IMG/VR virus record: IMGVR_UViG_3300026078_000017
Coordinates: 248,001-312,000 of that record
Reading direction: 5' to 3' (one strand)
Length of the DNA: 64,000 bases
Shown here: piece by piece, positions 183 to 63,733 of the stretch
Layout: every line of letters begins with the position of its first letter
Position numbering within the stretch: the first letter of the stretch is position 1
Made by a program: the position numbers and the translations under genes
Notes under the pieces: model-generated
Seen by the model: only the letters and a program-made list of their open reading frames with translations
Databases searched by the model: none
What the model was told of the DNA's origin: nothing

Positions 183-512
183 ATGGAATTTCATAAATCA
201 AAAATGATAGAAGTCAAAGTTGGTCAGGTGTATCAAATTCGAGAAGAGACAGATCCGGATCTGTGGTGTCACCTAATGATTTTTCAAGACGAAAGAGATA
301 GTCAAGGCAACTATCCCCACAAGCACTTGGAATACCCTTCTAAGGTCGTAATAACCCGTGAGAAGCATATTTCAAACGGACGTTGGGTGATTGAGGTTCA
401 GGTGGCAAATGTCATCTCACCGCTTCTGAGTGACCTGGAAAAACGTTGGATTTGTCGAGAAGGAGATCTCAGAGAAGATACAATTCAACTGGTAGATCAT
501 GGAACCCCATAA
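183..512 (+). CDS. small SH3/KOW-like protein (expanded GD family)
   Basis: VKVGQVYQI motif; coupled to next gene. Confidence 0.65.
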   Translation: MEFHKSKMIEVKVGQVYQIREETDPDLWCHLMIFQDERDSQGNYPHKHLEYPSKVVITREKHISNGRWVIEVQVANVISPLLSDLEKRWICREGDLREDTIQLVDHGTP

Positions 513-789
513 AAATCATAGACACTATGTGTCAAGGAAAAATCTCCCTAGTGTTGGTGACATAATCCAGTGGGGCGAATGTAAGCCCGGTGAGCATTAT
601 TTGCTGGTTTTGGAAGAGCCAAAGTTGATACAAGAAGCCAAAGATTTTTCCAGTCCCCTATTAAATGCCATAATAGACACACATTGGCAACTTTTGTGTC
701 TCGACATTGATTCTGGAACCCTGGCACACAATTGGTTTTGGGATGATGTTATCAGCGACTATGTGTTCATTAGTCGACTTGACCCATGA
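499..789 (+). CDS. small SH3/KOW-like protein (GD family)
   Basis: PSVGDII...YLLVLE...LCLD...FISR. Confidence 0.75.
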   Translation: MEPHKNHRHYVSRKNLPSVGDIIQWGECKPGEHYLLVLEEPKLIQEAKDFSSPLLNAIIDTHWQLLCLDIDSGTLAHNWFWDDVISDYVFISRLDP

Positions 790-817
790 CCAAAGCCATG
801 CTAGACTATTTGGTTCT

Positions 818-1111
818 ATGTTTCACAAAGGTACAGTAAAAAAACTGAAACTGCTTAAAGAAGTTCCCAAGAATGGCACGCTTCTTGTTCAGCAGCACAA
901 CAATGGCAATAATGTGTCGCTTGATTTTTCTCTCTATCTGGTCTTGGATTCTGAGTATATCGCGACTCGACGTGACTGGCGCTTAAATCTATGGTGTATC
1001 ACAGCAGGATATAACACAAGGTGGAATCCTCCGGGCTTTCCAAATGGAAAGCTAAATCTTGACTGGACAACAGGACCCGTTAAGTGGTATGTGTTTAGTG
1101 AGCCCGAATGA
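818..1111 (+). CDS. small SH3/KOW-like protein (GD family)
   Basis: PKNGTLLV...LYLVLD; ATG 818 follows promoter TTGACC(779)-TGCTAGACT. Confidence 0.65.
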   Translation: MFHKGTVKKLKLLKEVPKNGTLLVQQHNNGNNVSLDFSLYLVLDSEYIATRRDWRLNLWCITAGYNTRWNPPGFPNGKLNLDWTTGPVKWYVFSEPE

Positions 1112-1413
1112 CACGTCAGAAGAAAGTCAAGCATTTACCTGGCAAGATTCTTGAAATGCGTGCCAATGGATGTGTGATGTATTTTTTCTCAGATGAAGAC
1201 AATAATACTTCCAACCTCAAACACCTTCACAAGGGAAATCTCTTTATGATACTTGACACGGTCAAGTCAGAGGATGTTCCAGGCGAAGCCTGGCAAAAAA
1301 GCAACCCTCAAGAAAAGTGGTGTCGAGTTTGGCACTTCAAGTCTAATCTGATTGGATACATTGCCCTAGAGGACATAATCGTCTTCACAGAAGAAACTCG
1401 GTGGTTGACATGA
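1108..1413 (+). CDS. small SH3-like protein (GD family)
   Basis: LPGKILE...GNLFMILD; ATGA overlap. Confidence 0.65.
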   Translation: MTRQKKVKHLPGKILEMRANGCVMYFFSDEDNNTSNLKHLHKGNLFMILDTVKSEDVPGEAWQKSNPQEKWCRVWHFKSNLIGYIALEDIIVFTEETRWLT

Positions 1414-1622
1414 GCACTATTCTGCGAACAGGAGACATTATCCGTTATCGGCCAGCAGCCCTTGGTACAGTATCCTTGGTTTTGACAGAACCAATTTTGG
1501 TAAACAGTCGTTGTTGGCGTGTTAAAACGTGGGACCTAACCCGAAATGAACTGTCGGGTGCAGTCTTTTACACAATCAAGAACAATGCCGATCCCAACTG
1601 GGAAGTTATTTACCACATATGA
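1401..1622 (+). CDS. small SH3/KOW-like protein (GD family)
   Basis: RTGDIIRY...LVL...WDL...DPNWEVI; tandem paralog of next gene. Confidence 0.75.
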   Translation: MVDMSTILRTGDIIRYRPAALGTVSLVLTEPILVNSRCWRVKTWDLTRNELSGAVFYTIKNNADPNWEVIYHI

Positions 1623-1978
1623 CCAAAGGTGACAACAGGTATTTGCCAGAAGTAGGTGACTTGATCCGTTACCGTCGTCAGGAGTTTATCGAAGGTTTGC
1701 ACCTGGTTCTTTCTACTCCAGAAAAAGCCAGAAATTCAGCTTATGCCATGTATGTGGGTGGCGTGCCTGTGCATATGGACTCTTGGGTTGTGTCAGTTTG
1801 GGAATTGACTGGAATGTGTGAAAGCGGTGCAAGCTTTCAGAAGATCAACAGTCCAGATCCCAATTGGGAAATCGTCCTCAAGTTCAAGCCATCACACACG
1901 AGTCACCAGACACAGGTGCAAGGTGCAAGTATTCCGGAATGTCCTGATTGCTCAGGAAGTACACCAGACCGTCTGTAA
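1619..1978 (+). CDS. small SH3/KOW-like protein (GD family)
   Basis: PEVGDLIRY...LVL...WEL...DPNWEIV. Confidence 0.7.
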   Translation: MTKGDNRYLPEVGDLIRYRRQEFIEGLHLVLSTPEKARNSAYAMYVGGVPVHMDSWVVSVWELTGMCESGASFQKINSPDPNWEIVLKFKPSHTSHQTQVQGASIPECPDCSGSTPDRL

Positions 1979-2177
1979 GGGCGTTGCGAATCTCTTCCAC
2001 CCACAGAGCCTCGGTTTCCCGAAACTGGCTCAGATCGTCTTCTGTGGTCGCGAACATGGCACTGGCGAGCAGTAGTCCAGTCTCGTCAGAGGTTTCGTCG
2101 AAAAGAACCTTGACCGACTTGACGCCATTGGTGATCGAAGCGGTGTAGGTCGTGACGGCAGGCTGATTCATTTGCAA
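1884..2177 (-). CDS. hypothetical protein
   Basis: GC-rich codons, GAGGAG RBS, own promoter at 2200-2227. Confidence 0.75.
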   Translation of the reverse strand: MQMNQPAVTTYTASITNGVKSVKVLFDETSDETGLLLASAMFATTEDDLSQFRETEALWVEEIRNALTDGLVYFLSNQDIPEYLHLAPVSGDSCVMA

Positions 2178-2223: not shown

Positions 2224-2457
2224 TCAAGGTGCTCTAGAAATCAACTTCCAATATTTCTGAGTTGATTCAACGATACCTAAGTCACGCTTTTCCATGGTTT
2301 CCAGGTCAAGGCCGACAAATTGGGTGTGAACGGGACTGACAGGAGTTACCGAAAGAACAAGCACAAAAAGCATGTCTCTTTCTAGAAAAGAAGATTCGTC
2401 TTCCTCGGAAAATCTTACCAGATCTCCGACTTTTATGCTGTCATGCCTAATCGTCAT
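2224..2457 (-). CDS. small SH3/KOW-like protein (GD family)
   Basis: IKVGDLVRF...VLVL...GLDL...WKLISR. Confidence 0.75.
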   Translation of the reverse strand: MTIRHDSIKVGDLVRFSEEDESSFLERDMLFVLVLSVTPVSPVHTQFVGLDLETMEKRDLGIVESTQKYWKLISRAP

Positions 2458-2677
2458 CTTCAATCCGAGCAACAAAGTGCCAACATTTTTCGGTTGACGT
2501 GATAATGCCACATTGGTCGTACTGCATGGTATCAAGATTCAGACCATCGAAATCTGTGTGACCTTCCTTGCGTGGAATCAGCTTCAAGATCAAGAAACAC
2601 TTGACATGGAAGTCACTTTCGGGCCTTGACTTGAAGGAAACAACATCCCCAACCCTAACTTCATTCCATTTAATCAC
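2447..2677 (-). CDS. small SH3/KOW-like protein (GD family)
   Basis: VRVGDVVSF...FLIL...GLNL...WHFVAR. Confidence 0.75.
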   Translation of the reverse strand: MIKWNEVRVGDVVSFKSRPESDFHVKCFLILKLIPRKEGHTDFDGLNLDTMQYDQCGIITSTEKCWHFVARIEDDD

Positions 2678-2683: not shown

Positions 2684-2746
2684 ACCTTAGCATATAAGCT
2701 TGTTCTTGTCAAAGGGTTTGACAAGACACAAAAACCGTGCTAAAGT
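2684..2746. promoter_or_regulatory. back-to-back divergent sigma70-type promoters
   Basis: Minus TTGACA(2712-2707)..TGCTAAGGT; plus TTGACA(2718-2723)-17bp-TAAAGT. Confidence 0.7.
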
Positions 2747-2756
2747 CTCAGGTGAT

Positions 2757-3035
2757 ATGAATCGACAAGATATTAAGGTAGGTGACTTACTTGAGTGGAC
2801 AGGTAAAATGATGAATGAGGTTGGCATCATTTTGGTCCTAGAGATTTACACTCAAGACTTTACGGTGGAAGATCCAAACCTTGGAATGAAACCAACCTTG
2901 ACGAAACATCGTTACATGCCTGAGAGAACAGTATTTCTTGGGTTGTCGCTCAAAGACAACGACAAGGAGGTTTATGCTCTCAATAAAGATACCGAATCTT
3001 TTTGGCGTCTTGTGGAGCGTGCTAAAACAACATAA
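2757..3035 (+). CDS. small SH3/KOW-like protein (GD family)
   Basis: IKVGDLLEW...ILVLE...GLSL...WRLVER. Confidence 0.75.
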   Translation: MNRQDIKVGDLLEWTGKMMNEVGIILVLEIYTQDFTVEDPNLGMKPTLTKHRYMPERTVFLGLSLKDNDKEVYALNKDTESFWRLVERAKTT

Positions 3036-3062
3036 GAGCCCACCGATTTCTCAGTAGGCTCT
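3035..3062. terminator. hairpin between convergent genes
   Basis: AGAGCC...GGCTCT inverted repeat. Confidence 0.45.
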
Positions 3063-3085
3063 CACTTGTGACTCACGGTTGAGAC

Positions 3086-3397
3086 TCAGGTTGCTTCGCC
3101 CTTGTACTCGCAATCCTGGAAGTATGCCAGAACCCAACCGTACTGTGCGTGCAAGCGCTGCTCTTCCGCCATCGAACGAACAGAAGCGTTTTGGGCATGA
3201 GCCATGCAGTGAACGATGTAGTACTGGTCGGTCTTCACGATCATGAGGTAGAGACAGTCCTCGAACATGTCGAAAAACTTGTCGTTTGCTGCCAACAGCT
3301 TCTCACGGGTGACGAGCGTGTTTGCAAGCTCAAGTGGCGCCTTCATGTCACCAACGTCGCTCGTCAAGTCGATAACCGAAACAGTGTTGTTGCTCAT
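3086..3397 (-). CDS. hypothetical protein
   Basis: GAGGAG RBS, own promoter 3421-3448, GC-rich codons. Confidence 0.75.
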   Translation of the reverse strand: MSNNTVSVIDLTSDVGDMKAPLELANTLVTREKLLAANDKFFDMFEDCLYLMIVKTDQYYIVHCMAHAQNASVRSMAEEQRLHAQYGWVLAYFQDCEYKGEAT

Positions 3398-3444
3398 ATC
3401 GCGATCTCCTCAGTGACTTTGTTTTAGCAGAATCCCAGGTTGGG

Positions 3445-3801
3445 TCAAGCGATTTTCTTAAGCCACTCAGTCAAAAGCTCAGGACGATCGCCCTTGATCC
3501 AGGGAGAAACTCCCTCAGGAATCTTCTCACGCGAGGAAAAGACCACCACTGGAAGTTCTTGCTCTTCCGCTTCCCAAAACACACGTTGACCCATGTTGTC
3601 TTCCGGCCATTGACTGTCAAGTCGGGCAGGAAACACCCAATCAGTAACCACAGCACAGAAGCCATGATCGGGTGCACGAAGGGCTTTAATGGCCTCATAA
3701 AGCGTGCCAACGTGTGTGACCTGAAGTCCCAGCGCTGCACACTCCTCCAAAACCATTTCCGCCTTGCTGAAAGTGTCCTCAACCAAAAGAATCTTTTTCA
3801 C
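3445..3801 (-). CDS. single-domain response regulator (CheY-like receiver)
   Basis: KILLVED acidic pocket, VVTDW phosphoacceptor Asp, PVVVFSS, IK. Confidence 0.85.
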   Translation of the reverse strand: MKKILLVEDTFSKAEMVLEECAALGLQVTHVGTLYEAIKALRAPDHGFCAVVTDWVFPARLDSQWPEDNMGQRVFWEAEEQELPVVVFSSREKIPEGVSPWIKGDRPELLTEWLKKIA

Positions 3802-3863
3802 CTTCTTATGGTAGCAGGCTGATTTCCCTTGTCAAGGCATATTCTGTGCACTAAGATTGGTCG

Positions 3864-4187
3864 ATGGTGGAAAAGAGAAAGCGAAAGAAAGAATTGGAAC
3901 CTGACTTCTGGATTGCCACGCACTGGATTGTTGAACGTGAGCAAGGTTGCTTTCTTGATCCCAACATGACTTCTATCAAGGAAGCCAATGAAGATCCGCG
4001 ACCTTTGACTATTGCCGATCACAATACCATCATGACCGTATTGACAGAACCTATTAACCCTTTTGCAGACCCGACAAAGGAAAGAGAACGAGTCGCAAAC
4101 AGTCCTTATGTTCAGGTTTTGTGGATGGGTCAAAAATGGCACATCTCTACCAGTCGACTTAAAGCTTACTGTCGGAGACTTAAGTGA
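3864..4187 (+). CDS. small SH3-like protein (WIV/VLWxG subfamily)
   Basis: HWIVE...YVQVLWMG; paralog of 4460..4720. Confidence 0.65.
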   Translation: MVEKRKRKKELEPDFWIATHWIVEREQGCFLDPNMTSIKEANEDPRPLTIADHNTIMTVLTEPINPFADPTKERERVANSPYVQVLWMGQKWHISTSRLKAYCRRLK

Positions 4188-4450
4188 TATTTTCAGTTGG
4201 TACTGTACTCAAAATTACCAGTCAGATGGATGGTAAGATTGCAGTAAACCAGGGTGCGGCATTTCCAGGCTTGCAGTGGCGTAATGTCAAGGGACCATAT
4301 ATTATCATTCTTGAGAAAATCCTGTCTTATACAGACAACCGCATTCCTGATACAAAGTATTGGGTCTTTGACCTCGGAGCCCAAAGAAAAACAATGGTGT
4401 GGGAAGAGGATTTAGAGGATTGCACTGAGACTCTCAGTGTGGTAGACTAA
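4184..4450 (+). CDS. small SH3/KOW-like protein (GD family)
   Basis: FSVGTVLKI...IIILE...VFDL. Confidence 0.7.
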   Translation: MIFSVGTVLKITSQMDGKIAVNQGAAFPGLQWRNVKGPYIIILEKILSYTDNRIPDTKYWVFDLGAQRKTMVWEEDLEDCTETLSVVD

Positions 4451-4459
4451 TAGGTCAAC

Positions 4460-4720
4460 ATGAATAATACTCTTCCAAGAGACGAGGATTTTGGTTGTGG
4501 GTGGATTGTTCGTGAAGGCGGATGTCTCTGGCTTGATATCTACAAAAACCAATCCACGTTTTCAAATCTCTTTCGTTCAGCCAAAGTGCCACCAAAAAGC
4601 ATAATATTCGTTATTGAGCCTTGTGTGACTCACAAGGGATACGTCAAGGTTTTGTGGAATGGAAGATTTGCTATGGTTCATGTCCACGTGTTGCAAGCTC
4701 GATGTGAGCCTTTGCCATGA
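4460..4720 (+). CDS. small SH3-like protein (WIV/VLWxG subfamily)
   Basis: GWIVRE...YVKVLWNG. Confidence 0.65.
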   Translation: MNNTLPRDEDFGCGWIVREGGCLWLDIYKNQSTFSNLFRSAKVPPKSIIFVIEPCVTHKGYVKVLWNGRFAMVHVHVLQARCEPLP

Positions 4721-4995
4721 CCGAGGAAACCATTTCTGAGGGTTCCTTGCCTGATGTGGGAGACCTTTTGATACACTCAGTGACTGGCGAAGTGGTGATA
4801 GTGTTGACTAAACCATCACAAGAATTAACTCGCAAGCTCAGACTCATAAAAGAATACAAGGAAGCGCCTTGGCGTTGGTGGTGTGATGTTTTATGGTTGA
4901 CAACCAAACACAGAACGTCTATAGAATTGAGCTTCGATATCTATCAATCAGGCATCGGATACGTGTGTCGAACATGGCGTTGGGTAAAAGAGTAA
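4717..4995 (+). CDS. small SH3/KOW-like protein (GD family)
   Basis: PDVGDLLI...VIVLTKP. Confidence 0.7.
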   Translation: MTEETISEGSLPDVGDLLIHSVTGEVVIVLTKPSQELTRKLRLIKEYKEAPWRWWCDVLWLTTKHRTSIELSFDIYQSGIGYVCRTWRWVKE

Positions 4996-5243
4996 AAGAA
5001 GAGATCACCATTGATTCCTTGTGGATTGTCACAAAGGGTGACATGGCTTTGTCCAATGCCATAGCGTTCCACGCTCAAGTTTGTCCAATCAAGGTGTATC
5101 ACACGACATTTTTGGTCGTAGACATTACGCCAAATATTTACCTTCCAAGTAGCTCACCTCACATAAAAGTCTTGTGTGAAGGTCGAACTTACTGGACGTT
5201 TCCTAGAGACATTAACAAGTGTTGCAGGAAGGTCAGCAAATGA
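4974..5243 (+). CDS. small SH3-like protein (WIV subfamily)
   Basis: LWIVTKG...FLVVD...IKVLCEG; start uncertain. Confidence 0.6.
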   Translation: MALGKRVKEEITIDSLWIVTKGDMALSNAIAFHAQVCPIKVYHTTFLVVDITPNIYLPSSSPHIKVLCEGRTYWTFPRDINKCCRKVSK

Positions 5244-5503
5244 AGCTTGACAATCCGGCCAATCACCCAATCCCAGGGGACATTATTTGCATGCGTGGAT
5301 CGATGCGTATATTTTTGGTGTTAACCAAAACGCGATGGATTGACCTACTCGAAAGAGATCTAGGATACAACGATTACCCAGATCAATACAAGCTTTGGGT
5401 TTTGGATTTACAGTCTCTTACCAAAAGAGAAATTGTGCTACATAACGCTTTTGGTAAAGCGTTATGGCACACGTACCTTGATCCCAATGATCCACGCGCT
5501 TGA
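5240..5503 (+). CDS. small SH3/KOW-like protein (GD family)
   Basis: PIPGDII...FLVLT...VLDL. Confidence 0.7.
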   Translation: MKLDNPANHPIPGDIICMRGSMRIFLVLTKTRWIDLLERDLGYNDYPDQYKLWVLDLQSLTKREIVLHNAFGKALWHTYLDPNDPRA

Positions 5504-5508: not shown

Positions 5509-5787
5509 TCAGAATGGATCCCAAGTGCTGTAGTCGTCGAGTGCGCCCTCACGCGTGCGAAACTCGTACTCCTCACACTTGATTCCGACTGCATTCCTTG
5601 CAGCCATGAATCGACGCTTGGCATCGTAGATCTTGCCAGAACCCGGATTTTCATCCGAGAACACACCAACGATCGTCACCTCACGATCTCGATGATTCTC
5701 GATGTGATACAGAACCGTCACCATCTTGGCCGGCTGTGCAGAGATTTCGGTGGATCGAATGTGGGCGATGATTGCTTCGTTCAACAT
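5509..5787 (-). CDS. hypothetical protein
   Basis: GC-rich codon usage, coupled to upstream gene. Confidence 0.65.
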   Translation of the reverse strand: MLNEAIIAHIRSTEISAQPAKMVTVLYHIENHRDREVTIVGVFSDENPGSGKIYDAKRRFMAARNAVGIKCEEYEFRTREGALDDYSTWDPF

Positions 5788-6071
5788 GTCCAGATTATAT
5801 CAGTTTCCTCTGACCCGTCAAGTACTCGTTCACCATTTCTGATAAGATGAGCCTGAGGCTTTGCCTGGTTTTGTTCATCAAAGAACACACGTTGGATCTT
5901 TTGGGCTTGCAGAGAAAAGCCAAATATGTCAAGATAAAGATCTTCCTTGTTAAGGATATACGGTGCACCCAAATCCCCAAATCTCTCAGAGTTGATTTTG
6001 GTAATAATCCATGCTACCTTCTGGCGAGGGATTACAATCAAGTCACCAACCTGAACAGAACAAAGTTTCAC
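5781..6071 (-). CDS. small SH3/KOW-like protein (GD family)
   Basis: VQVGDLIV...LIRNGERV. Confidence 0.7.
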   Translation of the reverse strand: MKLCSVQVGDLIVIPRQKVAWIITKINSERFGDLGAPYILNKEDLYLDIFGFSLQAQKIQRVFFDEQNQAKPQAHLIRNGERVLDGSEETDIIWTC

Positions 6072-6304
6072 AACGGTATTCTCTCAATTGAGCTTGCATC
6101 CCAACCAAGAATATTGTAGTGTTTGACCTTGTGGCCTAAGTGAAAATCATACACCGTAATATTTCTTCCTGGATCATTGGGATCCTCAATGTCGATGTTG
6201 TCAACAGACAACACAAGGGAATATCTTTTCCCATATTTGTGGTCTTTTTGAATGAGTATGTCACCAGGTGATACATCACGTGCAGCAAGAAGAGTTGTAG
6301 TCAC
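6068..6304 (-). CDS. small SH3/KOW-like protein (GD family)
   Basis: RDVSPGDILI...LVLSVD...GWDA; tandem paralog. Confidence 0.75.
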   Translation of the reverse strand: MTTTLLAARDVSPGDILIQKDHKYGKRYSLVLSVDNIDIEDPNDPGRNITVYDFHLGHKVKHYNILGWDASSIERIPL

Positions 6305-6528
6305 AGAGAAATCCTTTGAGTGACCTCAGCATCCCACCCATCAATAATGTTTGGCTTGTATATAACACGTTCTTGGGTGTTTAGGTCGTATAAGGTGCAA
6401 CCTGGTCTATAACTGTTGACAGGATCAAAATCAACAGACAACACCAATAGACACTTGGGACCATTCTTGAGACCTGAACGAATGAGCAGATCTCCGAGTT
6501 TTAGGTCTCTGACGGGAAGGAGTTTCAT
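6301..6528 (-). CDS. small SH3/KOW-like protein (GD family)
   Basis: RDLKLGDLLI...LVLSVD...GWDA. Confidence 0.75.
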   Translation of the reverse strand: MKLLPVRDLKLGDLLIRSGLKNGPKCLLVLSVDFDPVNSYRPGCTLYDLNTQERVIYKPNIIDGWDAEVTQRISL

Positions 6529-6530
6529 TT

Positions 6531-6665
6531 TCAGTCACAGAAATCTGCGGTGGTACACTTATTGTCACCACTGCGAAGCTTTTGCGTCACTGACAAGTCC
6601 AGTGCAGCAACCGAAACCGCACCAAGGACCAATCCAAAGAGGACACTAGCCAGAAATCCACGCAT
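6531..6665 (-). CDS. small membrane/secreted peptide
   Basis: Hand-translated MRGFLASVLFGLVLGAVSVAAL...; follows promoter TTGACG..TGCTAAGGT. Confidence 0.5.
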   Translation of the reverse strand: MRGFLASVLFGLVLGAVSVAALDLSVTQKLRSGDNKCTTADFCD

Positions 6666-6684
6666 GAGAATACCTTAGCAGGAT

Positions 6685-6975
6685 TTATTTGAACGTCAAG
6701 ACTTTTTGTGTGGGAAGCTGCATTTGCCACACATTAGGTTCACTGTCTGGATAATCAACTGAAATCCACACATGACGTTTTATTTGCGCTGCGATGTCAA
6801 GAGCAAGGTATTCATTCGCTGACAGTTTTTTCAGTACGAGGTAAAAAGTAATTGTGGTAATATGACCTGGATCTGAATACTTTCTGAGATGATCAGAGTG
6901 AGCAAGAAGCGTACCACGAACAATTCGTTTTTTGTCTATCGGAATCACTGCCGTCGTCTCAGGTGAGGAAAACAA
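6685..6975 (-). CDS. small SH3/KOW-like protein (GD family)
   Basis: VRGTLL...FYLVLK...ALDI. Confidence 0.65.
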   Translation of the reverse strand: MFSSPETTAVIPIDKKRIVRGTLLAHSDHLRKYSDPGHITTITFYLVLKKLSANEYLALDIAAQIKRHVWISVDYPDSEPNVWQMQLPTQKVLTFK

Positions 6976-7142
6976 ATATGGCGTCTGACGTGTCGAGCAT
7001 GGTAATACTGAAGCGTCCCAAGGTTTAGTTTGTTGTTGTCAACGATCCACTTTCTCTTCTGTCGAGTGACCCATTTCTTGAGCCACGAGAATGGCCCAGG
7101 TGACACGACAGAGGGTTTAGACGACTCACGATAGGGTGTCAT
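6945..7142 (-). CDS. hypothetical protein
   Basis: MTPYR start like 38785; fills operon. Confidence 0.5.
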   Translation of the reverse strand: MTPYRESSKPSVVSPGPFSWLKKWVTRQKRKWIVDNNKLNLGTLQYYHARHVRRHICFPHLRRRQ

Positions 7143-7145
7143 GGG

Positions 7146-7277
7146 TCAACGGTTCCTAAGCCATTCTAGAGCCCACACGAGCACCTCAAAGAACACTGAG
7201 AGCAGGGTGACTCCAATCAAGAGTCCAAGACACAAAAATCCGATAGAAATCAACAAGGTTACCAAAAATCCAATCAT
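7146..7277 (-). CDS. small membrane protein
   Basis: Hand-translated 43 aa hydrophobic ORF, ATGA-coupled. Confidence 0.5.
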   Translation of the reverse strand: MIGFLVTLLISIGFLCLGLLIGVTLLSVFFEVLVWALEWLRNR

Positions 7278-7564
7278 AGCGTTACCTCTTTTCCTGTTCC
7301 AATGTGGTAGATTTTCCCATCTTGAGAGAACAACAATATAAAGTCATCTTCTATGTACAGAATTTCCTTTGTGTCTTTGTTCCGTGTGAGAACGTGCTCC
7401 ATCTTCATAAATTGAAGATGTAAACCATAGATCTTAATGGCCCACTGCGAACCCATTGTAGGGTTATTGTCAACCTTGCAGATTAGCCAAGATTCCGCAC
7501 GTGGCTTGCCATAATCCAGCCAGACAATATCGCCAGGAGAAACGATAAGGTTCGCATTTGTCAC
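7274..7564 (-). CDS. small SH3/KOW-like protein (GD family)
   Basis: VSPGDIVW...WLI; GTGA overlap. Confidence 0.7.
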   Translation of the reverse strand: MTNANLIVSPGDIVWLDYGKPRAESWLICKVDNNPTMGSQWAIKIYGLHLQFMKMEHVLTRNKDTKEILYIEDDFILLFSQDGKIYHIGTGKEVTL

Positions 7565-19824: not shown

Positions 19825-19826
19825 AG

Positions 19827-50566: not shown

Positions 50567-50782
50567 GTTCTTCTCCTGGGATTTTTAACCAGGTTGCACT
50601 AAAATCTAAAGGGTGATAGTCTTAGGTATCATGGAAACTCTACTGGTTGTCTCTGGCTGGTCTTGCCTCGTGACTGGTTTCTTTCTGTTTGTGCCGCTCA
50701 TGATCCTTGGATCCAAGGCAGGTTACAGTATCGGTGCAGCCATTGGTGGAAGTCTTGGAAGATTTTTTAGGTCCTTTGTTGA

Positions 50783-56509: not shown

Positions 56510-56511
56510 TC

Positions 56512-56796
56512 ATGAGTAAAAAGACGAAGGCAAAGGCGAAGGACAAGCGTGCAGCAGAGAAGCGCTCGCGGAAGGCGAGTCAGAAGGCTCAGTATCAGGC
56601 ATGGGCAGCGGCTGGTGTGACGAAGGGCAGCAAGCGTCAGCGAAGCAAGAAGGCTTCTGACTACAAGCTCTTGAATCCCCGCAAGAAGGGTCGTACGAGG
56701 ATTCCGTTCCCGGTTCACCTGTGGTTGGACAAGAACGGCAAGCTCAAGGCTGGTGCTCCGCATCGTGCTTGGCTTGAGCTTAATCGTCAGTCGTGA
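56512..56796 (+). CDS. highly basic protein
   Basis: K/R-rich, GC-rich codons. Confidence 0.75.
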   Translation: MSKKTKAKAKDKRAAEKRSRKASQKAQYQAWAAAGVTKGSKRQRSKKASDYKLLNPRKKGRTRIPFPVHLWLDKNGKLKAGAPHRAWLELNRQS

Positions 56797-57095
56797 CGAT
56801 TGAGAGACAAATTCCGGAAGATGTACGTGTGGGTGATATTGTTGAATTCACCTTCACGTACATCTATAAAAGTCCCACATCCTTGCCGCCAGTAAAAGAA
56901 ATCTGGCGTGCACTGATTTTAGAGCTTGTTGGTAATGATGAGTGGAAAGTGTTTGTTCTCAAGAACGACACATATCCTACACAGAACAATAGCGTTCACT
57001 TTTGGAGCACCAAGCAAGCTAGTAACGAAACAGTAGAAATTATTGGGTCAGTTGACATGGAAGATTTTCCTGCTAGTCTTAAGGAAAGAGGGTAA
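56793..57095 (+). CDS. small SH3/KOW-like protein (GD family)
   Basis: VRVGDIVEF...LILE...WKVF. Confidence 0.75.
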   Translation: MTIERQIPEDVRVGDIVEFTFTYIYKSPTSLPPVKEIWRALILELVGNDEWKVFVLKNDTYPTQNNSVHFWSTKQASNETVEIIGSVDMEDFPASLKERG

Positions 57096-57099
57096 ACTC

Positions 57100-57441
57100 A
57101 TGGAACTCACGAATCGAATGTTGATTGGCCTTGGACGCGCAATTGGCGCTACGACGGAAGCTGGTCGTAGTGCTCATGGGTGGATTCGTCTGGCACGGGT
57201 TCGCTCACGTCAGGATGAGAACAAGAATACCTACGTGATCGCCATCCGTGAGACCAAGCAGGGACTTCAGTTCGGATGTTCTTGTCCTCATTGGATCTAT
57301 CGTGTGCGACACAACCCGGGCGCCCTTTGCAAGCACCAGGAGCTTTTTCTAGGCCACACGGCAGGAACCGCACCCAAGACCGGGGTTTGGCTCTATCGTG
57401 CCGGGAAGGCATTTTTGCAGCAGACGCAGAAGGGTACGTGA
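57100..57441 (+). CDS. SWIM zinc-finger protein
   Basis: GCSCPHWIYR...CKH. Confidence 0.8.
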   Translation: MELTNRMLIGLGRAIGATTEAGRSAHGWIRLARVRSRQDENKNTYVIAIRETKQGLQFGCSCPHWIYRVRHNPGALCKHQELFLGHTAGTAPKTGVWLYRAGKAFLQQTQKGT

Positions 57442-57445
57442 CCTC

Positions 57446-57844
57446 ATGACCTACGCAATCGCAAACGTGGTGTATGGCATCGACCTCACCTATGATGAGA
57501 ATTGGCTCAAGGAACTGCCCAAGGAACTTGAACAAAGTTTCGATGACAATCCTGAGAACATTGGGATTACCACCGACTACTCGGGAAATGGTGAGCGTCC
57601 CATGTGGTTTGGGATTAAGCTGTGTGAGTTTGACGAGTGTCAGACCATTCGTCTGGACGAGATCGCCAAGTACAACAATCCCACGGATGAAATCAAGCAA
57701 AAGTGGGCAAAGAAGGTTGAGAATCTCGACCCCGAGCTTCACAAGATTTTGATTGATCATTTCGGTAGGTCAAATCCGGTTCCGGATGGAAGTGGCGGTC
57801 ATTCTTTGAGGCCGGAAGTTCTTATTATTTGGAGTAGCTCTTAA
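57446..57844 (+). CDS. hypothetical protein
   Basis: VVYGI...WFGI; GC-rich codons. Confidence 0.7.
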   Translation: MTYAIANVVYGIDLTYDENWLKELPKELEQSFDDNPENIGITTDYSGNGERPMWFGIKLCEFDECQTIRLDEIAKYNNPTDEIKQKWAKKVENLDPELHKILIDHFGRSNPVPDGSGGHSLRPEVLIIWSSS

Positions 57845-57858
57845 CAAAAGGGAAAACA

Positions 57859-58044
57859 ATGAAAACATACATGCAGGCGGTGTGGATTTTGGCTTTTGGC
57901 ATTGCTGGTTACATGATTGGAGAGGCAGTGTTTTCCACTCCAACTGAACGTGCAGAAACCGCATGCCACCAAAGCTGTGGGTATCATGGAGTTGCCAGCT
58001 TTTCCTCTGACTCTAGTGGCAATGTGACTTGTACCTGTCGCTAA
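57859..58044 (+). CDS. membrane protein with Cys-rich C-terminus
   Basis: TM helix, C-x3-C...CTC. Confidence 0.65.
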   Translation: MKTYMQAVWILAFGIAGYMIGEAVFSTPTERAETACHQSCGYHGVASFSSDSSGNVTCTCR

Positions 58045-58086
58045 TTCTGCTATCTTTTGACTTCACCTGGTCAAAGGAGCAAGGCA

Positions 58087-58734
58087 ATGAGTTTTCGCGA
58101 TAATCAAGTTGCACGTGAGGAACGTGAAAAGGTTGAGCTTCGGGATCGTGTTCTTTCCTTGAAAGAGGAGAATGAACGCCTTGCCCGTGAGCTTGCAATT
58201 GCCAAGCACAAGGAAGAGCAGACGGCTGAGGAAGATGCAATCGTCAATCGGCACAAGTACCTTGACAAGGTTGCTGTCCTTTTCGAAAAGATTTCCTATC
58301 CCTTCGTTGCCCTTGGCCGAGGGATTTTCGCCGTTCTTTCCTTTCCTGCAAGGATTTTCTCCTCACGACCAAACAAGGCTGAGGCTTTGGGTGGTATGTT
58401 CATTGCCTTGACCATTCTGACCATTGTTGGTTGTCTCGTTTGGCAGGAGTTTTATGCCGAGCGTGATGGTTATGTGGTTGGAAAGAACTACTATCCCGAG
58501 CATGAATCTTGTTCTTGGGAAGAAACCTGCACTGGTTCTGGTTCAACCCGATCCTGTACCAGCAACTACGTGTGTCACACTGTGCCTCCACAGTGGACTC
58601 TTGACATTGCTTATCAGGGCAATTCTGCCACATGGTCAGTTTCTGAGTCAGACTACGAAGCCACACAATATGGTGAGTGGTTTTGTGCTCGCGACCTTCT
58701 CCACACGGACCCTTGTGTCCAACCCCCACGATGA
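58087..58734 (+). CDS. coiled-coil membrane protein with Cys-containing extracytoplasmic domain
   Basis: N-terminal coiled coil, TM helix, C-terminal beta domain. Confidence 0.75.
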   Translation: MSFRDNQVAREEREKVELRDRVLSLKEENERLARELAIAKHKEEQTAEEDAIVNRHKYLDKVAVLFEKISYPFVALGRGIFAVLSFPARIFSSRPNKAEALGGMFIALTILTIVGCLVWQEFYAERDGYVVGKNYYPEHESCSWEETCTGSGSTRSCTSNYVCHTVPPQWTLDIAYQGNSATWSVSESDYEATQYGEWFCARDLLHTDPCVQPPR

Positions 58735-59042
58735 CTCACAATTCACTCATTTACTTCAATCACTCACAAACTGCTGATTGGAGAAATTTAAATCTGGAGT
58801 ATGCCTCACGGCTTTTCGATCGATGGATTGGAGAAGTCTTTGTGTGCCATGCCAATTATGTTGGTATGTCATCATCCAAGCCGACATTTTGGATTTATCT
58901 AGATGAGGGTAATTTCCTTGTTTGTTGTGGAAATTACGGCGGCATAGATGGAACCCTTGAATTTTTGATTGCCAAATCCTCAGCCAAAGTCTTGGTTAAG
59001 ATTAACGATTTCGACAATTTCTTTAAGAAGGCTGATGACTGA
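58731..59042 (+). CDS. small protein (YLG-like subfamily)
   Basis: HSQTADW...IGEVF...IYLDEGNF. Confidence 0.65.
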   Translation: MTHNSLIYFNHSQTADWRNLNLEYASRLFDRWIGEVFVCHANYVGMSSSKPTFWIYLDEGNFLVCCGNYGGIDGTLEFLIAKSSAKVLVKINDFDNFFKKADD

Positions 59043-59295
59043 CCTTAAGGATTTTTGTGCCAACACAACCGTGTTGGTGAGTACGGACAACATCAACTTC
59101 TGTGACCACACAGAGGCTGACTGGATGCGTTTTGCTGGTGAGTTTTATCAGCATGCTTACACAAACGACACATTTATGTTCCTTGGCAAGTTTGTTAATA
59201 GTTGTTTGATATTTTGGAACTTGAATCAAAATACCATCGTAGAAATTCCTCTCTCTGGTTTTTACCGCCTTTTAAGGATATCTAAAGAACCTTAG
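59035..59295 (+). CDS. small protein (YLG-like subfamily)
   Basis: HTEADW...AGEFY...FMFLG. Confidence 0.65.
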   Translation: MTDLKDFCANTTVLVSTDNINFCDHTEADWMRFAGEFYQHAYTNDTFMFLGKFVNSCLIFWNLNQNTIVEIPLSGFYRLLRISKEP

Positions 59296-59319
59296 ATGCT
59301 GTAAACTGACCCTAAGACG

Positions 59320-59589
59320 ATGAGCAAACCACTCCTCTTAGATAAACGCCAAGTAAAAGCCTTAAAAACAGGTGACCTGATCGAAATTGACTTCACACAG
59401 TTTCGTAGGATGAAAGACTCTCAGGTAGGCCAGTTTCTCTTTCTGAGTCACTGCAAGGTAACAGACTTCATCTCTGGCAAAACTGCCAGGGGAGTTGAAC
59501 TGGTGGCATTAACTACCGAAAGGAAGTGTTATCTTACCTATGAGCATCTGTGTGGACTATGGACAACGAGATTAGTTTCGAGAATTTAA
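59320..59589 (+). CDS. small SH3/KOW-like protein (GD family)
   Basis: LKTGDLIE...FLFL...LVSR. Confidence 0.75.
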   Translation: MSKPLLLDKRQVKALKTGDLIEIDFTQFRRMKDSQVGQFLFLSHCKVTDFISGKTARGVELVALTTERKCYLTYEHLCGLWTTRLVSRI

Positions 59590-59876
59590 CTCCAAGTGAC
59601 CTAATAGGTTGTATTCTTTGGACAACAGAAATGTTTTCTGAGTCAACTCCTAAAAATGGAGATCCTCATCTCATTCTTGAAGCTGGATATGACCACATCC
59701 AAAATGTCATAAGACCACCCGTCTTTCAGGTGAAGCTTCTTCATATCGCCCGTAACTTTGTTTTCAAGACTCGATGGGATGGTTATGAAAACTGGAGTCA
59801 CATGTTATTGCAGAGTGTCAACGGTCAAACCTTCCAGGTGATTGGAAGGGGAGAGGTCTTGACCAGATTTAGATGA
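59559..59876 (+). CDS. small SH3-like protein (GD family, divergent)
   Basis: LIGCIL...HLILE...VKLL. Confidence 0.6.
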   Translation: MDNEISFENLTPSDLIGCILWTTEMFSESTPKNGDPHLILEAGYDHIQNVIRPPVFQVKLLHIARNFVFKTRWDGYENWSHMLLQSVNGQTFQVIGRGEVLTRFR

Positions 59877-60190
59877 CTTATAAGCTGCCACCTGTTGCAT
59901 ACCAGTGGGATCCCAAATACAAAGTCGACCCACCATTTGAGGTGGGTGATCTGGTCATGCTTAAAGAAGCAAAATACATCATGAATCCAGCAACCAAGAT
60001 GTATTTTCCAAAGTTCTTTTATGGAATGGCGATTGTCCTTGAAAACAAAAAAATCACTCTGTCAAGCGGAGAAAACTCCGTTGAGGAGTTTTGCTTTACT
60101 GTATTTTGGCACCTTAAGGAACAGATCAAAATCGCCACATATGTGTGGGATGGCTCTATCACTCTGGTGAGTCATAAACCCGAACAATAA
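59873..60190 (+). CDS. small SH3/KOW-like protein (GD family)
   Basis: PFEVGDLVM...IVLE. Confidence 0.75.
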   Translation: MTYKLPPVAYQWDPKYKVDPPFEVGDLVMLKEAKYIMNPATKMYFPKFFYGMAIVLENKKITLSSGENSVEEFCFTVFWHLKEQIKIATYVWDGSITLVSHKPEQ

Positions 60191-60390: not shown

Positions 60391-60654
60391 TTACTCGGTC
60401 ACTTTCTCCAACCACCACTCCGGATATAACTTGATGGACATTTTGGTTTGGGTGTTCAGATTCAACAGAATTATGCGTTCAACCTGAATTGGTAGTCCAG
60501 ACGGGTGGGTTAGAGGACGTAACTCGCCTTCAGAAACACCAAGTGTTGGTACTGTCTCAATTGCAAGAACCAAGTATTTTGTGTTAAGTAAGTTGCCTCT
60601 GTAGCGAACTTGAACAATGTCAGAAAGGGCAATGCCCTGAGAAAGAGTGTCCAT
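60391..60654 (-). CDS. small SH3/KOW-like protein (GD family)
   Basis: LSDIVQ...KYLVL...LLNL. Confidence 0.65.
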   Translation of the reverse strand: MDTLSQGIALSDIVQVRYRGNLLNTKYLVLAIETVPTLGVSEGELRPLTHPSGLPIQVERIILLNLNTQTKMSIKLYPEWWLEKVTE

Positions 60655-60694
60655 CTTTTGGAAGCTTAACACTTGTCACACCAAAGTGCAATCA

Positions 60695-60732
60695 AAAACA
60701 AATCGAGCCACCCAGCTTTATGAGTGGCTCGA
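60695..60732 (-). terminator. intrinsic terminator
   Basis: TCGAGCCAC...GTGGCTCGA then U-rich on minus strand. Confidence 0.7.
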
Positions 60733-60759
60733 CTTGGAGATTGGAACCTTTGCAGGTTT

Positions 60760-61068
60760 TCAGGCAGCCGTCACCGGCGCAGGGCGAACCGTCACGGCCA
60801 GGTCCGTGAGAACCTCACGCGACTTGATCATGAAGTACCCGTGCTCGTGGCGCGCAATCACGGTCGTGTTCGGCAGGCCGAGCTGAGCACGAAGCAGCGC
60901 GAACGCCTGGCGCCGAATCTGCTTCTCCGTCGCACCCTCGCGCATGAGGCGCTCACACCCGACCAGCGAGAGGTACACGCGGGCATTCGCCTGCGGGCGA
61001 CCAGCGCCCTCCGAGTGAGCACTACGAGCAACCTGAGCAGCCGTCACAGTAAGATTCATCGTCGTCAT
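60760..61068 (-). CDS. hypothetical protein
   Basis: Very GC-rich, AAAGAAAGAAGGATA leader, own promoter and terminator. Confidence 0.8.
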   Translation of the reverse strand: MTTMNLTVTAAQVARSAHSEGAGRPQANARVYLSLVGCERLMREGATEKQIRRQAFALLRAQLGLPNTTVIARHEHGYFMIKSREVLTDLAVTVRPAPVTAA

Positions 61069-61220
61069 TGTGGTATCCTTCTTTCTTTCTTGTTTGGTTT
61101 CTTGTTGTTTGGGAACAGGCACTAGAACTTTTGCTTCTTCTTTTTCTCTTCGGCGATCTCGCCAACAACTTAGGTTTAGCAGAACTCCCATTGTGGTCAA
61201 CCTCTTTCTGATCTTTTCTT

Positions 61221-61568
61221 TCAGACCACCGTTTCAACACTAGAAACGGTCATGGATTCAGTCACTTCCGAAAGCGCCTGAACAATCCTAAGCTCATCAG
61301 AATGAAAGAACACACGCAGTTTCATTCCGGGACATTCCGGTTTGACCTGAGACATAAGCGTCTGATCGGCCCACAAAACAAGAACGTCATACTGATAGGC
61401 GTTCGGGTCACCATCAGGCCAAACGAGGTGAGAACGCGTCAGTGTTGTCTTAGAAAGGCACTCAGACAGCACCAGGTACTTGGCAAGAAGACTCTTGGTG
61501 CTGTTGACACGTACTATAATGTCACCAGTGTGACATGGGGGCTGACACACCCAAATCTTGGCAGACAT
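61221..61568 (-). CDS. small SH3/KOW-like protein (GD family)
   Basis: HTGDIIV...KYLVL. Confidence 0.7.
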   Translation of the reverse strand: MSAKIWVCQPPCHTGDIIVRVNSTKSLLAKYLVLSECLSKTTLTRSHLVWPDGDPNAYQYDVLVLWADQTLMSQVKPECPGMKLRVFFHSDELRIVQALSEVTESMTVSSVETVV

Positions 61569-61897
61569 TATTCAATCCTCTGGACGAGAGACCAAGTGCC
61601 ACTTTGAATCCTTTTGTCGCGGGATTCGGGCACAGTAATCATGCCTCTTGCGCCTGCTCCTCTTGGCGCAGCAGGCCCAATATAAAGATTCTTCAAGTCA
61701 CCGCCCAAGTTTATGACTGTATAGGTGTGCAAAGGAATCTTCATATGAGAAGATTCAGCAGGAACTGTGCCAGCATACTTGATGACGAAAAATAAATGAC
61801 TGTCAAAGTCTAAACCCGTGTCAGAGATGAAATTATATGAAATAATGTCACCAGGTTGGAAAGGTCCACGGTACTTGGGTGGGTTGATTGTCACCAC
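61568..61897 (-). CDS. small SH3/KOW-like protein (GD family)
   Basis: PFQPGDII...FFVI...VINL. Confidence 0.7.
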   Translation of the reverse strand: MVTINPPKYRGPFQPGDIISYNFISDTGLDFDSHLFFVIKYAGTVPAESSHMKIPLHTYTVINLGGDLKNLYIGPAAPRGAGARGMITVPESRDKRIQSGTWSLVQRIE

Positions 61898-62145
61898 TCC
61901 GTTTTAGCAGAAAGCTCTTCCATGGCAAGTTTTTCTTGCCAGTCATTAAATAACAAGTCACTATATGACAGACGGACAACTTTGTTGTTTTTTAAATCCC
62001 AAGCCCTAAGGCTTGTATGTTTTATTGGACTTTCCAACAACAAATAAAGAGAAGGTATTGAATCTTTCTTTGATTCCTTGAGATCGAGACTGTAAGTCCA
62101 CCCATTGTATGACACTAAGTCGCCACACTTATGAAAATGTGTCAC
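61891..62145 (-). CDS. small SH3/KOW-like protein (GD family)
   Basis: KCGDLVS...YLLLE...AWDL. Confidence 0.75.
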   Translation of the reverse strand: MTHFHKCGDLVSYNGWTYSLDLKESKKDSIPSLYLLLESPIKHTSLRAWDLKNNKVVRLSYSDLLFNDWQEKLAMEELSAKTEW

Positions 62146-62489
62146 ACCTCATCCTTACGGTCGTAATATTTCCAGAAGAGGGTTGGATCCTTGAACCAAA
62201 CCGTGTCAAGCTTCTTGTTGTCGTCACACTTGAGGATTTTCAGGCGAACCCTTGGTGAAGCTGTAACCGGAGAATTTTCCTCTACCTTATCCAAGGACAC
62301 TTCAAGAATCGTGTAAAACCGATTCTGATCGTGCTTTGGTACAATAAGCATGCCAACGACCGGCACATTTGCTGGAATCGTATAAGGTAACGAGTTTGCC
62401 ATATCCACTTTCTCTTCTTCTTCCTTTTGTTCTGCTGGTTCATTTGCTCCAATGAACCTATCAATCATTGACCTAAGCATATTTTTCAT
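62142..62489 (-). CDS. small SH3/KOW-like protein (GD family)
   Basis: PVVGMLIV...YTILE. Confidence 0.7.
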   Translation of the reverse strand: MKNMLRSMIDRFIGANEPAEQKEEEEKVDMANSLPYTIPANVPVVGMLIVPKHDQNRFYTILEVSLDKVEENSPVTASPRVRLKILKCDDNKKLDTVWFKDPTLFWKYYDRKDEV

Positions 62490-62728
62490 TCTAATGTACT
62501 CCAAACTTCTACACGAAAACCTTCATTTACGTACCAATAGTCAAGTTCTGACCTTAAAATTATCAGGAGATGTTGTGTAAATGATGACTTTCCAAGACGA
62601 ACCACCTTGAAATAATGTGCGTACTCATGAAGTACACCATTATCAAGAGCCAAAAATAACAGGTCATTTGAATCGATACCGATGATACCGATGATTATGT
62701 CGCCTGCTTTGGCTGGAAATGGCTTCAC
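62486..62728 (-). CDS. small SH3/KOW-like protein (GD family)
   Basis: AKAGDII...FLALD. Confidence 0.7.
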   Translation of the reverse strand: MKPFPAKAGDIIIGIIGIDSNDLLFLALDNGVLHEYAHYFKVVRLGKSSFTQHLLIILRSELDYWYVNEGFRVEVWSTLE

Positions 62729-62732
62729 GAAG

Positions 62733-63128
62733 TTAGACTAGCACATGGAATGGCAATGTGCCATTGTAATCAGTCAAGTTTATTAGGTACTCATAGTGTG
62801 AGTGATTGCACCAAAACACAAACCGAATACAAGATTCCATTTGACGATTCTCAAGAACGACAGGCCAGTAAATGTTCATCAACATTGCACCTTGCCCACG
62901 TTTGGCAGTGTGCCATCCTAGGATTTTACCTTGACCTGGAGAAGAGTTGCCTCCAGATTGAACTTGACACATCGTACATGCAAAATCAAAGGCTACAGCA
63001 GTTCCACGAGGCAACTTGTCCCAATAGCCCCTAAGATTTTCCAGTTTCTTCGTGCGAGCCTTCGTTCCGTTGAATAAATCTTCGGCTATCGACTTAGCCA
63101 AATTTACCAAAATGGAACGAACCGTCAT
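62733..63128 (-). CDS. hypothetical protein
   Basis: In operon. Confidence 0.6.
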   Translation of the reverse strand: MTVRSILVNLAKSIAEDLFNGTKARTKKLENLRGYWDKLPRGTAVAFDFACTMCQVQSGGNSSPGQGKILGWHTAKRGQGAMLMNIYWPVVLENRQMESCIRFVFWCNHSHYEYLINLTDYNGTLPFHVLV

Positions 63129-63141
63129 TCCATTAAATATG

Positions 63142-63441
63142 CTATCTCTTTTGAACCAACTTCAAAAACTTGTAAACCATGTGGTCAGGGACGGTCATGA
63201 CAACGATCTGACCTTGGTCAATCATTTTGACTCCCACAAGCTCCATAAGCTTGTAGTCACCATTGCAATCGGTGTCCCAATCAAGAGACGGGGTTCGTTT
63301 GGCGCCCATGAAAACAACTGTGCTTCCAGCCTTCAACACCCCTTTGACTCTTTTTTGACCTTGAGCTATTTCACACACGTGTTCTTGCTTGACCTTAAGC
63401 AAGTCCCCGTTACGAAAGAAGTTCAGACGTTTTTTAGGCAT
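63142..63441 (-). CDS. small SH3/KOW-like protein (GD family)
   Basis: FRNGDLLKV...VVFMG. Confidence 0.7.
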   Translation of the reverse strand: MPKKRLNFFRNGDLLKVKQEHVCEIAQGQKRVKGVLKAGSTVVFMGAKRTPSLDWDTDCNGDYKLMELVGVKMIDQGQIVVMTVPDHMVYKFLKLVQKR

Positions 63442-63733
63442 GTGAAACCACTAGAAAGTCATCAATGTCCGAAATGTGACTCAACACAAAGTAACACACA
63501 ACCCGATTGTTGCTCAAGTCTAAAAGTTTCATACTATGGAAGTTTGGTGGTACTTCAAGTACAGTTCCATCAAAAAACGGAACTTTTTCCCCAAGACCAA
63601 TTTCTAAAACCAAGTAATTGCTGGAACTGTTAACAAACATATGGTCATAGGCGAAACCAGCAAATCGATGTTCTTGGTCCTTGTTTACCGTAACAATGTC
63701 TCCAACTTGATATTTGTCACACAAGGTCATCAA
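63434..63733 (-). CDS. small SH3/KOW-like protein (GD family)
   Basis: YQVGDIV...YLVLE...LLDL. Confidence 0.75.
   Translation of the reverse strand: MMTLCDKYQVGDIVTVNKDQEHRFAGFAYDHMFVNSSSNYLVLEIGLGEKVPFFDGTVLEVPPNFHSMKLLDLSNNRVVCYFVLSHISDIDDFLVVSHA

Follow-up and report, generated by a model that had tools for sequence, protein, structure and literature searches.

The early region of a phage is usually a patchwork of orphan genes that have no relation to one another. Multigene families are known from the large eukaryotic DNA viruses, among them the ankyrin, BTB and F-box proteins of giant viruses, the MGF genes of asfarviruses and the US22/SUKH proteins of herpesviruses. For SUKH see PMC3113570. 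Among phages we found one comparison, Bacillus phage G, whose ~35 Zn-ribbon copies were termed 'unprecedented' and for which binder or regulator roles have been proposed (PMC7824862). Here we describe a 64,000-nucleotide (nt) stretch of phage DNA (the window; positions 248001-312000 of IMGVR_UViG_3300026078_000017, 320,479 bp), in which about half of the genes are highly diverged paralogs encoding a small SH3-like beta-barrel protein that had not been described before. An earlier reading of this DNA, made from its letters and open reading frames (ORFs) and called here the sequence-only reading, had noticed the family and knew of no described phage family at this copy number, with which the single comparison to phage G agrees.

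The same genome was recovered by other assemblies, namely JGI 3300005614 (320,456 bp), Logan SRR5508097 (320,363 bp) and Ga0207702_10000008, with 0 differences over the 20 kb in which assemblies were compared. Their start points differ while their size is nearly equal, which indicates that this uncultured jumbo-phage genome of ~320 kb is complete and either circular or circularly permuted. The recognisable genes of the window are phage-like, and megablast found no DNA-level relative of the region among 50,697 GenBank phages.

Detection and anatomy of the family

All-against-all BLASTP of the 512 ORFs of at least 45 residues recovered only 7 clusters, with 2-3 members each, and is therefore too insensitive for this family. 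The count by profile hidden Markov model (HMM) that the sequence-only reading had proposed was made in the window: seeded with 35 ORFs picked by their G-D motif, the profile grew to 54, 64, 67, 67, 67 and 68 ORFs and then converged, and the best of 1024 shuffled or reversed ORFs scored E=0.028 against it. Under relaxed inclusion, a target-decoy iteration collected 75 real and 2 decoy matches (1024 decoys). When members were left out one at a time, 53/68 were recovered at E≤1e-3 and 63/68 at E≤0.01; profiles built from either half of the window alone picked up 13 and 8 members of the other and 0 decoys; and profile-profile comparison, by which the sequence-only reading had allowed that no homology might be found, gave E<0.02 in 9 of the 15 pairs of BLAST-defined mini-clusters, against 0/15 for reversed controls. 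Because of these controls we put the family at 63 robust members, 68 in the converged profile and ~75 likely ones, perhaps ~85 with marginal candidates. The original estimate of 100-110 was thus too high, and its 'more than half of all genes' becomes about half, the 75 likely members making up 49% of the ~153 genes in our crude map (which uses longest-ORF starts) and 34% of the bases. The family does extend across the window where it had been placed, from the first to the last member listed in Table 1, with uneven density (no member in 8-16 kb; 20 of the 24 genes in 16-24 kb).

The members are short (median 92 residues, range 70-150) and share a median pairwise identity of 17%, with a maximum of 40%; at 17-40% protein identity, synonymous sites between paralogs are saturated. 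The glycine of the G-D turn is invariant (100%) and the aspartate is conserved in 93%, and the remaining conserved columns are all hydrophobic: a pair after G-D, aromatic-L-V/I-L, V-L/F/W-D/N-L and aromatic-x-L-V/I. No polar residue is conserved besides the structural Gly-Asp turn, nor is any basic one. This is the layout that had been read by eye, and the terminal (L/I)(I/V)SR said to be frequent in it also recurs, with S-R following aromatic-x-L-V/I where the C-terminal end aligns; it is a minority feature, which a relaxed pattern finds in 18/75 members against 4/80 controls and a strict one in 6 members. Insertions are concentrated after profile columns 14 (up to 22 residues) and 31 (up to 18). 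Net charge spans -10 to +11, and the isoelectric point (pI) is below 6 in 31 members, 6-8 in 26 and above 8 in 18 (n=75). The members are indeed more AT-rich than the other genes, by a modest amount (GC 42.1% against 45.2%; Mann-Whitney p=7e-6). No signal peptide or hydrophobic membrane segment is present in them, which points to soluble proteins and rules out secretion or a membrane location; fusion to other domains is ruled out in the window, where the long members contain no Pfam domain.

The genes are arranged in short same-strand blocks in which stop and start codons overlap. The sequence-only reading had them mostly coupled by such overlaps; across 88 same-strand junctions (longest-ORF starts), 53 overlap and 63 lie within 15 nt, with the 4-nt overlap accounting for 22. 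Shine-Dalgarno-like motifs are weak or absent ahead of most starts in the window, including those of most family genes, and their scarcity before family genes may hint at a host with weak use of this signal. The motif TTGCA/TTGAC, ~17 nt, TGnTA(T/G)AnT has 9 strict matches in the window against 0.86 expected, and its relaxed form turns up between genes at ~17 places at the front of gene blocks, several of them immediately before family genes; from this pattern and the close spacing of the genes we infer that the blocks may be read early by a sigma-70-type polymerase and their genes translated in a coupled way.

Fold, extent and relatives

The AlphaFold model of the best member (48711-48998) has a predicted local distance difference test score (pLDDT) of 83, a predicted template modelling score (pTM) of 0.70 and five strands, which sit directly after G-D, in the L-V-L run, in the V-L-D-L run, after a 4-residue hairpin and in the C-terminal L-V run. 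From this placement, the variable regions correspond to the b1-b2 and b2-b3 loops, which hold the insertions, and conservation falls in b1, b2, b3 and b5, which bears out the fixed scaffold with variable loops of the sequence-only reading. The weakest leave-one-out member (24619-24849) was modelled with the same topology (pLDDT 76, pTM 0.60) and a short helix before b5; the two members therefore share one barrel and do not fall into unrelated folds.

Foldseek matched the first model to EF-P domain I and eIF5A N-domains in the PDB (best E 0.03, template modelling (TM) score up to 0.69; the closest entry is 5wxk_B, E 0.03, TM 0.69 on target) and, in BFVD, to small uncharacterised phage barrels that include DUF1653 and DUF4314 (best E 2e-3). 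The second model matched KOW and ribosomal barrels, PWWP/Agenet and spectrin SH3 in the PDB (E at least 0.3, TM 0.5-0.6 on query), and the high-probability matches are SH3-like barrels only. The models thus support, at the level of the fold, a predicted five-stranded SH3-like small beta-barrel. At the level of the sequence, no relation to named Pfam, PHROG, NCBIfam or PDB-sequence entries was found. The KOW profile (PF00467) matched 0/68 members at E≤0.1, only the first G-D turn being conserved and not the second KOW glycine; classical SH3 profiles (PF00018 and relatives) matched none of the 68, in which ALYDY and WW signature columns are lacking; the EF-P/eIF5A N-domain had no sequence match in the 68 either, the hairpin tip being variable (T, S, N or K) and the members single-domain. 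A marginal PHROG match, to 'virion structural protein' (E 0.011), was obtained with one member, and tblastn of two members against the 50,697 GenBank phages gave none. Hence the SH3/KOW likeness that had been proposed stands as a resemblance of fold, with two models and three Foldseek searches behind it, and not as membership of either family.

The array continues to the left of the window with ~7 more members within 6 kb, and then with none for 13 kb, where larger genes (RNaseH-like, PhoH/PIN) take over; to the right, no member is found over 20 kb, which carry sigma-70-family, NUDIX, NAD kinase, SpoU, RNase T and peptide deformylase genes. Given these member-free stretches on both flanks, the array is a bounded arm of ~70 kb with ~80 copies.

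A search of 1.84 billion representative proteins with the profile returned 31 matches at E≤1e-3: 20 come from the window itself, 3 belong to repeat proteins with no relation to the family, and the other 8 are foreign. The foreign ones sit in small-gene arrays on environmental contigs, each with several members (Table 1). Locus L024 is syntenic with 0.5-4.2 kb of the window and L029 with 37.9-38.8 kb, and in both, identity is 32-37% between family orthologs and 37-63% between the genes beside them. Such syntenic orthologs in related phages imply that the expansion is older than the split between the phages and that individual copies have been retained, and the slightly greater likeness of adjacent pairs (20.0% identity against 17.5% for distant pairs, p=0.005) points to old tandem duplication. 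Taken together, the comparisons show a lineage-specific multigene expansion by old tandem duplication, followed by extreme divergence. The distribution is narrow: no member occurs in the 22 other large-phage loci (IMG/VR contigs) around the radical-SAM gene that they share with the window, a word-indexed protein search with the family profile returned the window's own proteins only, and conserved neighbour genes searched in genome, metagenome and viral collections led to the source contig only. In two of the related arrays a polypeptide with two fused barrel domains is present (L026:10001-10540, P0009; L030:8746-9102, P0018), and L030 also has an ArdC-like anti-restriction gene (18187-19071), ~2 kb from the closest family member.

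Possible functions

Our favoured reading, to which we assign a probability of roughly 0.45, is that the family is a new SH3-like barrel expansion whose germline-encoded members serve the phage as small soluble binders in host takeover or counter-defence. The blocks would be early genes read by the RNA polymerase of the host; each copy would be a non-enzymatic binder, with its specificity in the two long variable loops (b1-b2 and b2-b3), counterparts of the SH3 RT and n-Src loops; and the copies together would be a germline-encoded repertoire, with different host proteins as the targets that it neutralises or redirects. With no conserved polar residues beyond the Gly-Asp turn, the family is unlikely to be an enzyme, and its net charge varies too widely to suggest nucleic-acid binding as a uniform role. 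Hypermutation of the diversity-generating-retroelement type is ruled out, as there is no reverse transcriptase domain among the larger window ORFs scanned and no template/variable repeat pair in the window, whose longest direct repeats are ≤40 nt or coding echoes of the G-D motif; the diversity is thus germline-encoded, and the 'antibody-like repertoire' of the sequence-only reading keeps its value only as an analogy to a V-gene array. The arm has an accessory or counter-defence flavour, with its Rnl1-type RNA ligase, tRNA-Lys and homing endonucleases and with the ArdC-like gene of L030. Most likely, the copies are small binders that differ in their targets and sit in an accessory arm together with RNA-repair and tRNA functions. 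A bolder version, rather unlikely in our estimate, would be an innate binder library of constant barrel, possible shared docking face and ~80 loop pairs, in which each copy disables a different protein of host defence or housekeeping, or hands it over to a common effector; duplication would thus have given the phage an equivalent of a V-gene array.

Several points weigh against host-directed binders. Variable loops around a conserved core are expected of any old divergent barrel family, would also result from neutral divergence and are no proof of directed diversification; the family orthologs are barely more diverged than their neighbours, a comparison that covers three loci only; both models were built with the family's own alignment, and their Foldseek matches, as usually happens with barrels this tiny, have weak E-values (0.002 to 0.3); early expression is predicted from consensus-like promoter sites; and the figure of ~80 copies covers the window and its flanks, all but ~215 kb of the genome.

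The top structural matches (EF-P domain I, eIF5A, the KOW domains of Spt5, MutS2 and RfaH, ribosomal proteins) speak for KOW/Sm/Tudor/EF-P-domain-I-like binding of RNA or DNA, by which the members would regulate translation, transcription or RNA stability of the phage's own blocks; this is rather unlikely, however, with Pfam KOW, EFP_N and Sm matches in 0/68 members, no conserved basic residue, and a pI that is acidic in the 31 members noted above, with net charge down to -10. Alternatively, the barrels could be adaptors whose constant face, made of the G-D turn and the b5 end with its S-R, docks one partner (a protease or a phage machine) while the loops recruit targets. The nearly invariant G-D, the recurrent L-V-S-R end, the adjacency of b1 and b5 in the modelled fold and one weak structural match to a Lon specificity factor (5ycq) would suit such a role, which we nevertheless regard as quite unlikely, since only a minority has the S-R end, barrels of this kind commonly have a structural turn of G-D and hydrophobics, and no candidate partner was identified.

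Paralogous sets of virion proteins are known from phiKZ-like phages, and the marginal PHROG match of one member would be in line with decoration or ejected internal proteins, in paralog sets as in some jumbo phages; yet the arm is without recognisable structural genes, its promoters look early and host-type, and the members are far smaller than known internal proteins, which makes a virion or packaged role very improbable. It is also hard to believe that the array consists mostly of decaying duplicates of little present function, or that it is in part an artefact of profile drift: the divergence is extreme, the split-half profiles recover the other half only in part and 5/68 members fail leave-one-out at E≤0.01, but the reading frames are unbroken and lie close together, the decoy searches come out clean, syntenic orthologs persist in other phages and both modelled members give the same barrel. 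Tandem, tiny, divergent and non-enzymatic paralogs are the known signature of immunity clusters (PMC3482391, PMC3113570), and the copies might be antidotes to many toxins of host abortive-infection systems or competing elements, like the orphan immunity genes of polymorphic toxin systems; we consider this quite unlikely, as no toxin gene or domain occurs among the scanned neighbours, and the idea largely overlaps with counter-defence in any case.

For the favoured reading of small binders directed at the host, two precedents would serve as leads and not as tests. Nip of phage phi3T, with predicted SH3-like domains, binds and blocks a host defence protein (PMC11984713), and in T6 the GIY-YIG homing endonuclease SegB drives segmental amplification of anti-defence loci (PMC13096335); in the bolder version of that reading, the resident GIY-YIG endonucleases may have helped to build the array.

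Other features of the arm and comparison with known systems

The coordinates are collected in Table 1. The tRNA is the only Rfam RNA in the window. Together with the ORF that it abuts and with the Rnl1-type ligase, it resembles the means by which T4 counters tRNA-Lys-cleaving anticodon nucleases; the ORF (8727-9065, minus strand) has an HNH-like Cys/His pattern by eye, for which Pfam gives a marginal Zn-ribbon match only. The member-free stretch at 8000-16000 is a GC-richer island (48-51% against ~43%), with ORFs that lack a Pfam match and with several minus-strand promoter-like sites. Two adjacent Cys-rich ORFs in it (14579-15028 and 15035-15619, both minus) show internal Met starts, a signal-peptide-like stretch and a lipobox-like Gly-Cys by eye, and may be putative lipoproteins; phage lipoproteins often serve superinfection exclusion or lysis. 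In phages of Tunturiibacter (Acidobacteria), a gene annotated as DNA methyltransferase is 44% identical to the DUF7227/GP88-like protein, whose own gene contains a 12-nt tandem repeat of ~4 units at 45327-45374. Two more mini-families of three small paralogs each (53568-54402, plus strand; and 3864-4187, 4460-4720 and 55895-56257; phmmer E 2e-6 to 7e-3) are unrelated to the barrel family by profile. At 24030-24186, in a 0.8-kb stretch with no convincing gene, lies a 29-nt inverted repeat, 90% complementary, with a 99-nt spacer.

Table 1. Family genes, promoter-like sites and other features of the window, with related arrays in other contigs (w, weak member)
Feature	Position	Strand	Basis and remarks
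4 family genes: 499-789 (first member); 1108-1413; 1401-1622; 1619-1978	499..1978	+	HMM E≤7e-10; 499-789 has an ortholog in L024, 36% identical
2 family genes: 2224-2535 (longest-ORF start over-extended); 2447-2677	2224..2677	-	BLAST-level paralogs; ortholog in L024
4 family genes: 2700-3035; 4184-4450; 4717-4995; 5219-5503	2700..5503	+	HMM E≤2e-10
5 family genes: 5781-6071; 6068-6304; 6301-6528; 7274-7621; 7561-7881	5781..7881	-	HMM E≤7e-9; 4-nt overlaps among first three
5 family genes: 18068-18322; 18285-18536; 18545-18802; 18799-19044; 19011-19304	18068..19304	+	HMM
11 family genes, densest run: 19289-19540; 19579-19824; 19827-20132; 20072-20413; 20434-20892; 20889-21149; 21119-21403; 21393-21635; 21632-22099; 21822-22136; 22133-22396	19289..22396	-	HMM; promoter-like site 19547(-) heads run
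Lone family gene, opposite strand	22736..22990	+	HMM E 5e-8; extended -10 site 15 nt upstream
14 family genes: 22971-23204; 23224-23550; 23504-23824(w); 24619-24849 (modelled); 24846-25121; 26953-27195(w); 27192-27530; 27659-28081(w); 28017-28322(w); 29017-29262; 29259-29489; 29476-29784; 29760-29987(w); 31761-32105	22971..32105	-	HMM, target-decoy; weak members have a G-T turn in place of G-D
4 family genes: 33808-34053; 34050-34346; 34430-34750; 34747-35016	33808..35016	+	HMM
8 family genes: 38278-38553; 39257-39553; 39899-40177; 40155-40415; 40399-40614; 42979-43362; 43822-44028; 44452-44712	38278..44712	+	HMM; 38278-38553 has a syntenic ortholog in L029
8 family genes: 47514-47795; 48711-48998 (modelled); 48991-49206; 49207-49461; 49458-49709; 49694-49948; 49945-50187; 50783-51142(w)	47514..51142	+	HMM; P-F-x-V-G-D start common to six tandem copies
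4 family genes: 56261-56509; 56793-57095; 59320-59589; 59873-60190	56261..60190	+	HMM
5 family genes: 60391-60672; 61221-61568(w); 61568-61897; 61891-62145; 63434-63733 (last member, right array edge)	60391..63733	-	HMM
Sigma-70-type promoter motif, example	19547..19574	-	Consensus match
Further promoter-like sites	11625, 11907, 12392, 15462, 26923, 27631	-	Consensus match
Further promoter-like sites	4440, 30583, 41899, 44735, 45102, 54844	+	Consensus match
tRNA-Lys(UUU)	8656-8727	-	Abuts 112-residue ORF 8727-9065(-)
GIY-YIG/NUMOD1 homing-endonuclease-like gene inside array	35488..36327	-	Pfam PF01541, E 3e-7
DUF7227/GP88-like protein	45135-45839	+	Pfam
Radical-SAM protein	46617-47513	+	46-59% identical relatives in 22 IMG/VR contigs, some 231-456 kb
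Second GIY-YIG homing-endonuclease-like gene (NUMOD3) inside array	51792-52442	+	
T4 Rnl1-type RNA ligase	52339-53568	+	phrog_562, E 2e-39; ~30% identity to phage ligases
Relative arrays	L026: 16 in 20 kb of Logan contig; L030: 6 in 189-kb groundwater contig; L036: 6; L029: 4; L024: 4		Profile

Since Pfam, PHROGs and NCBIfam lack the family, it also closes a gap in the annotation of a clade of large phages from soil and groundwater. Its ~80 genes on one fold are a natural series for reading sequence differences on a fixed scaffold and, if they are binders, would amount to a library, already made, of affinity domains that are small, stable and cytoplasmic, and would also open a direct way to study how one jumbo phage deals with many host systems simultaneously.

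The family resembles several known systems and differs from each of them: (i) The SH3-like and KOW barrels of translation (EF-P domain I, the eIF5A N-domain, the KOW domains of Spt5, NusG and RfaH; PF00467, PF08207) are likewise five-stranded, with a Gly turn followed by hydrophobics opening strand 1. The members, in contrast, have no sequence match to them and neither a conserved modified-lysine loop nor a conserved basic surface, and are stand-alone proteins that range from acidic to basic. (ii) Classical SH3 domains have the same strand order, and the two most length-variable loops of the members are the counterparts of RT and n-Src, which set SH3 ligand specificity and are the loops randomised in engineered SH3 binders; the ALYDY/WW signature and any Pfam SH3 match are nonetheless missing from the members. 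(iii) Small single-copy phage barrels (DUF1653, DUF4314 and unnamed BFVD entries) are alike in size, fold and phage origin, with no sequence relation detected, and we know of no expansions of the DUF1653 or DUF4314 families. (iv) Nip is a likeness by description, as an SH3-like phage protein, whereas it is a single multi-domain protein of 279 residues. (v) The multigene families of eukaryotic viruses are also tandem-duplicated, diverged binding scaffolds in a variable arm, linked there to host interaction; here the host is bacterial, the fold is another one and the proteins are much smaller. (vi) The Zn-ribbons of phage G are, like the barrels, a tiny domain that has multiplied within one jumbo-phage lineage, but the barrel family has another fold and is packed in one 70-kb arm, with at least twice the copies of what is the largest phage expansion that we found described. 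To our knowledge, it is the largest one-family expansion in a phage. Thus, small-domain expansions in large viruses were already known, and what this arm adds to them is the family, its fold and its copy number in one place.

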